From the NCBI RefSeq assembly GCF_006345805.1, contig NC_042997.1:17918001-17982000 (forward strand): a stretch of DNA of 64,000 bases. Direction: 5' to 3'. Under the pieces are notes generated by a model. That model had not been told where the DNA came from, did no database searches, and worked only from the letters and a program-made list of their open reading frames with translations. This DNA is from Octopus sinensis (lineage: Eukaryota). How positions within the stretch are numbered: the first letter of the stretch is position 1; every line of letters starts with the position of its first letter. Below are positions 30,630-30,707 of this stretch, piece by piece. The position numbers and the translations under genes are program-made.

Positions 30630-30707
30630 GGTCACTTTTGAGTGCTACTGGTAACATGTAACCCAGTGCAACCTGTTGCATGGTCGGGTCGTCGGCAACT
30701 AAACTGG
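30630..30707 (+). ncRNA. HDV-like (nested double-pseudoknot) self-cleaving ribozyme at the RTE 5' end
   Basis: P1 GGTCAC(30630-35)/ATGGTC(30680-85); P2 CCAGT(30663-67)/ACTGG(30703-07); P3 GCA/TGC with L3 ACCTGT; P1.1 CC/GG(30686-87); short P4; J4/2 with catalytic-C equivalent C30699 followed by TAA. Confidence 0.7.

Follow-up and report, generated by a model that had tools for sequence, protein, structure and literature searches.

Few animal retrotransposons are as widespread or as horizontally mobile as the RTE LINEs. To our knowledge, the route by which these promoter-less elements obtain a defined and translatable 5' end is known for a few insect and trypanosome families only.

HDV-like ribozymes are established at the 5' ends of RTE, baggins, R2 and L1Tc elements (PMC6765202, PMC4908430, PMC3774820), and such 5' ribozymes can double as protein-binding and IRES-like structures (PMC6765202; PMC3774820). 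Variants of a different ribozyme, twister, have been described at the 5' end of the Schistosoma RTE element Perere-3 (PMC8501958). The HDV nested double pseudoknot is defined by the order of its strands, P3a-P1.1a...P3b-P1b-P1.1b (PMC4908430).

Here, we analyzed a 64,000-nucleotide stretch of Octopus sinensis DNA (the window, numbered from its first letter), in which an earlier sequence-only reading had drawn an HDV-like self-cleaving ribozyme at the 5' end of an RTE LINE. We find that the LINE begins with a real conserved structured 5' RNA, of which two other independent copies were recovered. Conservation does not follow the fold as drawn. A redrawn core of HDV type fits the conserved helices better and is discussed here together with its alternatives.

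Materials and Methods

The drawn anatomy was converted into a descriptor consisting of a 6-nt P1 starting from G with at most one mismatch, a J1/2 of at most 30 nt, a 5-bp P2, a 3-bp P3, an L3 of 4-9 nt containing CC, GG after P1, and C-N-R-A before the 3' strand of P2. It was run on the window, on 200 dinucleotide-preserving shuffles, and on the homologous sites of two related loci. Folds were tested on a three-sequence alignment trimmed so that positions 1-7 stay in register. Conserved stems were enumerated without reference to any model, and RNAalifold was also run on the module. Cores were searched over the 228-column alignment with a P1 of 5-7 bp, a P3 of 3-4 bp and a P1.1 of 2-4 bp, allowing at most three bad cells and demanding at least three compensatory pairs.

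Results

Identity and Anatomy of the LINE Copy

Pfam found RVT_1 in ORF fragments at 31883-33278, and the stitched translation of the element retrieved more than 1000 relatives with top identities of 45-49%, 49% being the maximum to any database protein. These relatives, proteins of ~1050 aa, combine Exo_endo_phos and RVT_1 with a PHD-like motif and are encoded on contigs of ~3.5 kb. Among these contigs is L006, from a metagenome, whose APE+RT ORF of 1061 aa (786-3971) is intact. The window LINE runs collinear with L006 from the 5' module via the RT down to the shared 3' terminus, GGACGTTAAA...(ATG)n. The single APE and RT ORF of the RTE clade is thus recognizable in the window from RVT_1 and from collinear tblastn matches to Exo_endo_phos + RVT_1 proteins. 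The short 3'UTR likewise carries a simple tandem repeat and not poly(A), ending in ...GGACGTTAAATGATGATGATGATGAC at 33700-33727, as does the (ATG)n 3' end of L006. Coordinates of the features are collected in Table 1.

Table 1. Features of the RTE LINE copy, its 5' module and its flank, in window coordinates.
Feature	Position	Strand	Evidence and remarks
RTE-clade LINE copy	30627..33727	+	5' end complete; APE domain internally deleted; frameshifts and stops; (TGA/ATG)n tail
Shared 5'-terminal octamer, TCAGGTCA	30627..30634	+	Alignment of three independent loci
Conserved 5'UTR module (module B)	30627..30825	+	76% identity to L006 483-660 and L010 46-245
Candidate HDV-like ribozyme of the sequence-only reading; also span of the redrawn model	30630..30707	+	Sequence as described
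Hairpin A, TACTGG/CCAGTG	30646..30668 (30646-51/30663-68)	+	100% paired in three sequences; U-A to A-U compensatory change in L006
Hairpin E, CACCAAGC-UU-GCUUGGUG	30714..30733 (30714-21/30726-33)	+	Compensatory changes in relatives
Hairpin F, AGGGUG/[UC]ACCC[UA]	30735..30755 (30735-40/30750-55)	+	RNAalifold and stem enumeration
Rest of 5'UTR	30826..31001	+	5'UTR comparison with L001, L004-L007, L012 and L029
Probable ORF-start remnant	31002..31172	+	Weak collinear tblastn matches
Deletion junction	31168..31215	+	tblastn of P0020, P0001 and P0005: CIPQHILVISDF aligned to residues ~285-300, from 31178
Inverted copy, in the 5' flank, of LINE-internal 31176-31215	30527..30566	-	Self-blastn, 92.5% over 40 nt, opposite strand
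(CATG)n(TATG)n microsatellite, adjoining the LINE start	30551..30627	.	TRF

In tblastn with the ~1050-aa APE+RT proteins, the window matched from residue ~283 to the end, at 31178-33500. Because of an internal deletion, the APE domain is represented by a short N-terminal remnant and its last residues, ~190 endonuclease codons being absent at the deletion junction. There, microsatellite-like CATGTATGCATGTATGTAT is followed by LINE coding sequence, C-I-P-Q-H-I-L-V-I. On the 5' side, 31086-31172 reads ..NID*ASCNDHTR*RGGS, similar to endonuclease residues ~58-91 (RDIDLCCVQETRWRGKS; tblastn E 0.05-0.3, 401-nt search), and judging from these matches the stretch from 31002 is probably what is left of the ORF start. 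In every RTE relative examined, the start codon is closely preceded by the motif AGGGCATCC, which the window carries at 30925-33. With its internal deletion, stops and CpG decay, the window copy is a dead element.

The right arm of an inverted repeat (31176-31215) is LINE coding sequence and the left arm is its inverted copy in the 5' flank. A 40-nt piece that spans the deletion junction (TATG-like repeat plus the CIPQHILVI coding sequence) is therefore found again, inverted, beyond the microsatellite. Junction and flank copy together look like a template-switch or hairpin-mediated rearrangement. We had initially held the LINE to be 5'-truncated at ~31190, with 30630-31170 a separate insertion between TATG repeats, because tblastn begins at residue ~283 and the inverted repeat brackets ~540 nt. 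This idea was dropped because L006 shows that the segment is an RTE 5'UTR, and because tblastn identified the right-hand repeat as LINE coding sequence. A twin-priming inversion, or a foreign minus-strand coding fragment within the 540 nt, was also rejected, since six-frame Pfam and six-frame concatenated protein searches of the sequence between the arms found nothing.

Other mobile sequences were observed in the window. A second, 5'-truncated related RTE copy lies at 961-3190 (70-75% identity to 32152-33696). Fragments of the RTE 3' end only, sharing ...GGATGTTAAA(CGA/TGA)n, lie at 34040-34090, 36742-36775, 42100-42245, 42926-42960, 52586-52620 and 56292-56454; these are copies truncated to a very short length, or else SINE-like elements that have the RTE tail in common. 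An ORF of 627 aa at 53287-55170 (-) is intact and combines a Spin-doc-type zinc finger with DUF4371 and a hAT dimerisation domain; it is a hAT-family transposase or a domesticated derivative. A 181-aa ORF at 19025-19570 (+) with a partial DDE domain of mariner Transposase_1 belongs to a mariner-like element fragment, and 28684-28729 is an interstitial telomere-type repeat, (TTAGGG)7.5.

The Conserved 5' Module and Its Relatives

Over 184 nt, the 5'UTR start of L006 is 76% identical to window 30627-30825. This module is the best-conserved part of the whole element in the comparison with L006, scoring 117 bits, whereas coding patches reached at most 56 bits and at most 67-74% identity. A scan of metagenomes with the pattern of the most conserved block returned one chance match and one real new locus, present in JGI metagenomes as L009 and L010 (99% identity, hence one locus), where no RTE ORF follows the module. 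Scans of genome contigs and of viral sequences for further homologues of the module gave chance matches only. Among twelve contigs of related proteins, L006 is the one full carrier, and two copies of the L006 family, L013 and L030, are cut so that they begin inside or after the module; the other close relatives have different 5'UTR modules or are truncated. Independent module sequences available for comparison were thus three: the window, L006 and L009/L010.

In the L009/L010 locus (L009 2960-3138 on the minus strand corresponding to L010 46-250), the module lies ~50 nt after a tRNA-like 3' half (GGGTTCAATTCCCGACC), and this locus may be a non-autonomous element or a relic. A 23-nt deletion in L009 takes out hairpin F.

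Further downstream, window 30907-30995 is 69-73% identical (blastn, L001 87-159) to the 5'-terminal module of other RTE families. The shared pattern, GGGGCTCCTTAGC...TCTAGGAGA...TAAAACC, is present in L001 (77-159), L005 and L007, with two tandem copies in L007. Three types of 5'UTR (A, B and C) occur among RTE proteins that are 60-70% identical, and this RTE clade seems to assemble its 5'UTRs from modules that can be exchanged. An HDV-like fold was also sought in the other 5' end type (GGGKYAGATGG..., in L001, L005 and L007) and rejected: a P1-like pairing, GGGUCAG/CUGAUUU, exists in L001 and is lost in L005, and no P3 or P1.1 fits.

The 5' Boundary

It had been proposed that the LINE starts within a few nucleotides of G30630, where the (TATG)n array ends. 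This boundary was right to within 3 nt, the array ending at 30626/7 according to TRF, and its assignment to the 5' end of an RTE LINE was borne out by homology to the 5'UTR start of the intact L006 and to the third locus. Similarity among the three loci begins at TCAGGTCA, 3 nt 5' of the proposed G1, and the flanks upstream are unrelated: (TATG)n in the window, ATATATC with extra GGTCA units in L006, and GATCACATG in L010. That the LINE abuts (TATG)n is unremarkable, because such arrays are common across the window, where (CATG)n(TATG)n-type repeats occur at no fewer than eight other places. Arrays of (TATG)n/(ATAC)n were observed at 34799-34948, 41786-41860, 46957-47032, 49081-49453, 49872-49963 and 51854-52054, and contig L004 has a (TATG)n array (9741-9919) near its RTE.

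The trinucleotide TCA is found directly 5' of G30630 in all three loci, for which the chance is ~2e-4, and the conserved leader is possibly A-N-G-TCA. It is followed by one GGTCA unit in the window and in L010, and by three tandem units in L006 (441-458); the terminal pentamer repeats thus vary in number between loci. Because all three loci share TCA and L006 has three GGTCA units, the template RNA must have begun upstream of G30630. Had the template RNA been produced by cleavage 5' of G30630, G would be the first base of new copies, which it is not. In HDV-like retrotransposon ribozymes, conservation among copies starts at the first P1 nucleotide, a trait that is not seen here. The expectation that full-length copies would not reach well beyond G30630 was in part disappointed, since all three extend 3 nt further.

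Conservation of the Fold as Drawn

In the fold as drawn, P1 pairs GGTCAC (30630-35) with ATGGTC (30680-85) with one C-A mismatch, P2 pairs CCAGT (30663-67) with ACTGG (30703-07), and P3 pairs GCA (30668-70) with TGC (30677-79). The loop CC (30672-73) faces GG at 30686-87, P4 occupies 30688-96, and CTAA is at 30699-30702. All elements of the double pseudoknot can indeed be placed in the window copy, where every helix can form, but P2, P3 and P4 are not conserved in the relatives.

The descriptor of this anatomy matched the window at the candidate site and at one other, 36874-36965 (+), the latter taken as a chance match of the kind expected from shuffles. Shuffled windows contained 1.18 +/- 1.05 sites each, and 71% of them contained at least one, so that the drawn motif alone is at chance level. 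At the homologous site of L006 and L010 the descriptor found no match, even when loosened. The descriptor search that had been suggested as a check therefore did hit the site, at the frequency of shuffled sequence, and no Rfam ribozyme model supported it. Rfam returned no HDV, CPEB3, drz or other ribozyme family at gathering score over the whole window, no ribozyme at E<=10 on 30400-31000 (only microsatellite-driven miRNA look-alikes), and no ribozyme in L006 at E<=1 over the whole locus or at E<=10 over 430-800; these nulls are weak evidence, as the Rfam ribozyme models are narrow and ignore pseudoknots.

A covariation analysis had also been suggested, and it turned out against the drawn helices. 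On the three-sequence alignment, 80% of cells were paired, there were zero compensatory changes, and 7 of the 19 pairs varied only by breaking. P2 keeps 5/5 pairs in the window, 4/5 in L010 and 3/5 in L006, and P3 keeps 3/3, 1/3 and ~0/3, respectively (50% paired in the alignment), so these two helices are not conserved in the relatives; P4 loses a pair in them. At the P3 site both relatives read ACT versus GCA in the window. At the 3' strand of P2, L006 and L010 read ACCG[G/T] versus ACTGG in the window, a CpG-to-TpG change at 30705 that is shared by L013. Given these sequences in the relatives, the neat P2 and P3 were made by window-specific changes, including the CpG-to-TpG transition. The tidy helices are thus products of change in a dead copy and not relics of a better ancestor. 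The deviations of the fold had been attributed to decay after insertion. This holds for the CAA in P4, which comes from an ancestral CGA by CpG loss (although restoring CGA does not improve the drawn P4), and it does not hold for P2 and P3, which changes in the window created.

Covarying Helices of the Module

Model-free enumeration recovered other stems. The pairing ACCC/GGGU (30661-64/30686-89) becomes GUCC/GGAC in L006, with two compensatory pairs and zero mismatch, and UGUA/UGCA (30657-60/30677-80) becomes CGUA/UGCG in L010. Five stems with at least two compensatory pairs were observed against 0.36 expected, a number reached by 0 of 300 column shuffles, although this excess is overstated because some of the five stems share columns. 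MFE z-scores were only -1.5 and -2.0.

Three hairpins predicted by RNAalifold complete the picture. Hairpin A uses the 5' strand of the drawn P2 and also overlaps the redrawn P2 and P1.1 described below. Hairpin E is maintained as CAAUUAGGC/GCCUAUUG in L006, as CAUUAAGC/GCUUAAUG in L013 and as an 11-bp version in L010. According to the stem enumeration, the loop of hairpin F (30745-49) can pair with UCCAA at 30815-19, with two compensatory positions.

A Redrawn Core of HDV Type

The two covarying helices at 30657-64 flank, with their 3' strands, the segment UGGUC (30681-85), which is the complement of the terminal GGUCA, and their 5' strands (30657-60 and 30661-64) are contiguous. The resulting order of strands is that of the HDV nested double pseudoknot. 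In the redrawn model, the ancestral first ~80 nt would form such a double pseudoknot and would cut the transcript at or near its 5' end. P1 would be 30630-34/30681-85 and P3 would be 30657-60/30677-80; P1.1 would be extended to 4 bp (30661-64/30686-89) and P2 would be 30648-52/30703-07. The candidate catalytic C would be C30699 in the invariant C-N-A-A joiner (J4/2, CUAA, 30699-30702), with no real P4. The first ~200 nt of the LINE would as a whole be a conserved pseudoknotted leader RNA.

In this model, which was found post hoc and from three sequences, 94% of cells are paired with three compensatory pairs (in P3 and P1.1), a result matched by 18 of 500 shuffles; slid controls all fell well below it. 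In the core search, such cores arose in 1% of column shuffles and in 9% of 4-column-block shuffles, figures that leave uncounted the fact that P1 falls on the first bases of the element.

Covariation of P3 and P1.1 is a matter of observation, as are that of the downstream hairpins, the conservation of the module and the LINE boundary; the formation of P1 and P2, and cleavage by the RNA, we infer. Both P1 and P2 show zero compensatory changes, and P1 never varies informatively. Its first pair, G30630-C30685, is present in all sequences. The helix counts 5 bp in the window and 3 in L010; in L006 it can reach 7, where it overlaps P3. P2, CUGGU/AC[U/C]GG, comes directly after the invariant CUAA; it keeps 3/5 pairs in L006 unless a bulge is allowed, and the ancestral ACCGG strengthens it (G-C) relative to the window. 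C30699 is followed by U/C-A-A in the window, L006, L010 and L013 (CCAA in L013), and then by the 3' strand of P2. With a conserved C and purines in J4/2, C30699 is a plausible candidate for the equivalent of C75.

In P1.1, GG 30686-87 is invariant; the CC drawn as its partner (30672-73) is also invariant and hence uninformative. The covarying partner of GGGU is ACCC 30661-64, giving 4 bp rather than 1-2 bp. The terminal CAGGU can also pair elsewhere, either with the invariant ACCUG (30671-75) or, in L006, with an insert private to that locus. Besides the 4-bp P1.1, the redrawn core is non-canonical in its 16-nt L3, its 4-nt P2-P3 spacer, its missing P4 and its first pair, which is G-C and not G-U.

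Discussion

The by-eye HDV fold was right in place, perhaps right in kind, and wrong in three of its five helices. We consider the redrawn HDV-type self-cleaving core to be the most likely single mechanism for the module, although we would give it somewhat less than an even chance. Several points argue against it: hairpin A, which is fully paired and has a compensatory change of its own, competes with the core, the TCA leader is conserved, the terminal CAGGU has other possible partners, the core departs from the canonical form, no Rfam ribozyme model matches, and the MFE z-scores are modest.

Hairpin A and the conserved TCA also suit a non-catalytic structured leader of ~200 nt in the 5'UTR, serving as a protein-binding platform or in an IRES-like role, with the RNA starting at or before T30627. 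Such a leader would account for TCA (possibly A-N-G-TCA) being kept 5' of G30630 in 3/3 loci, for a hairpin A that covaries yet is incompatible with the HDV fold, and for the covarying helices that lie beyond a ribozyme core, namely hairpins E and F and the contact of the F loop with 30815-19. It also agrees with the lack of ribozyme family matches in Rfam. Binding of the R2 protein to a 5' pseudoknot and IRES-like roles are documented (PMC6765202). However, it leaves unexplained why the strands around the segment complementary to the terminus should follow exactly the HDV order, and why the C-N-A-A joiner should be invariant. We regard this leader as nearly as likely as the redrawn core, and likewise below an even chance.

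More speculatively, the ~200-nt module might be a mobile pseudoknotted 5' cassette, acquired in distant hosts by different RTE lineages and by one non-RTE locus or more. At its core would then lie an HDV-type ribozyme of divergent structure, with a P1.1 of 4 bp, without P4 and with the leader kept, or else a novel kind of RNA for 5'-end processing or protein recruitment. On present evidence we consider this proposal unlikely.

It is also conceivable that the module acts as DNA, as an internal promoter carrying the start and factor sites, with TCAGG at the first base resembling an initiator as in insect LINEs. The long invariant runs with little covariation would be consistent with this, as would conservation beginning exactly at TCA and the promoter-like swapping of 5'UTR modules (types A, B and C) among close RTE relatives. 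Nevertheless, TCAGG fits the initiator consensus only in part, a 26-nt insertion in L006 means that no spacing-dependent downstream element is conserved, and the compensatory changes in several hairpins point to selection at the RNA level. RTEs are moreover described as lacking promoters of their own (PMC6765202). A promoter thus seems rather improbable.

Equally improbable, in our view, is that the module has little or no function, its similarity reflecting recent shared ancestry or sequence capture and its covariation arising by chance among three sequences. The number of independent sequences is indeed just three, the module occurs without an RTE ORF at L009/L010, and 5'UTR modules are exchanged among relatives. 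Against this, conservation is higher in the module than in the coding sequence of these elements, compensated stems are in large excess (0/300 shuffles), and hairpin E is maintained in four sequences.

Another self-cleaving class, either a twister variant as in Perere-3 or an undescribed class, is very unlikely. CUAAAC...CCAAGC...GAGGAGGGU superficially resembles the twister blocks UAA, CCCAAGC and GGAGGAGGG (PMC8501958). In twister, however, CCCAAGC forms a loop, whereas in the module it makes up the 5' side of hairpin E and varies together with the opposite side (UAGGC, UAAGC, AGGAC). P2 complementarity is missing, and at E<=10 Rfam matched neither twister nor hammerhead, hatchet or pistol. 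The twister features looked for in the module (the UAA cleavage loop, P2 CUCC/GGAG, L4 GUCCCAAGC and the T1/T2 pseudoknots) were absent. A twister variant was therefore rejected, its look-alike blocks sitting unconserved in a covarying stem. The ribozyme exactly as drawn (P2 30663-67/30703-07, P3 30668-70/30677-79, P4 30688-96) is largely refuted and has the least chance of all, for although every one of its helices can form in the window copy, shuffled windows contain a motif this loose 1.2 times on average, its P2 and P3 break without compensation in L010 and in the intact and presumably active L006, the descriptor is null at the homologous sites, and the perfect helices come from window substitutions and CpG decay.

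A leader that is better conserved across hosts than the ORF behind it is a good handle on 5'-end formation. If the module cleaves, the sequence space of HDV-like ribozymes is wider than descriptor searches and Rfam have captured; if it does not cleave, RTE biology gains a new conserved cis-element. In either case the locus is a cautionary one for HDV folds drawn by eye.

Compared with known systems, the window LINE is closest in its coding part to RTE LINEs with a single ORF of APE, RT and PHD-like domains (annotated as "craniofacial development protein 2-like"), with which it shares the RT, a PHD-like Cys/His motif, the 3' end GGACGTTAAA(TGA)n and, allowing for the deletion, a size of ~3.6 kb. 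It differs from them in lacking ~190 endonuclease codons and in its many stops. With the twister variants of Perere-3 (Schistosoma mansoni), the module has in common an RTE-clade host, a 5'-terminal position and short look-alike blocks, but the blocks lie in helices and not in loops and are unconserved, and twister P2, P4, T1 and T2 cannot form. The 5'UTR pseudoknot of R2 and the IRES-like leaders of R2 and L1Tc are, like the module, conserved pseudoknotted RNAs of ~180-200 nt at the 5' end of a promoter-less LINE. Those leaders extend a proven HDV-like ribozyme, whereas the catalysis of the module is putative and the module has no sequence similarity to them.

The comparison with the HDV-like ribozymes of retrotransposons (drz-Agam-2 in a mosquito RTE, R2, baggins and L1Tc) is the most instructive. 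The module departs from this family in its 16-nt L3, the absence of P4, a G-C first pair and three conserved bases before the cleavage site; it has no Rfam match. As in the family, the candidate core occupies the first bases of an RTE-type LINE with G at +1, a stretch 3' of P1 would pair with the first part of the P3 loop, the order of strands would be retained together with a long J1/2, and a C-N-A-A joiner precedes the last strand. The redrawn P1 and P1.1 would have 5 and 4 bp, versus 7 and 1-2 bp in the family, and the sum of the two is 9 in both.
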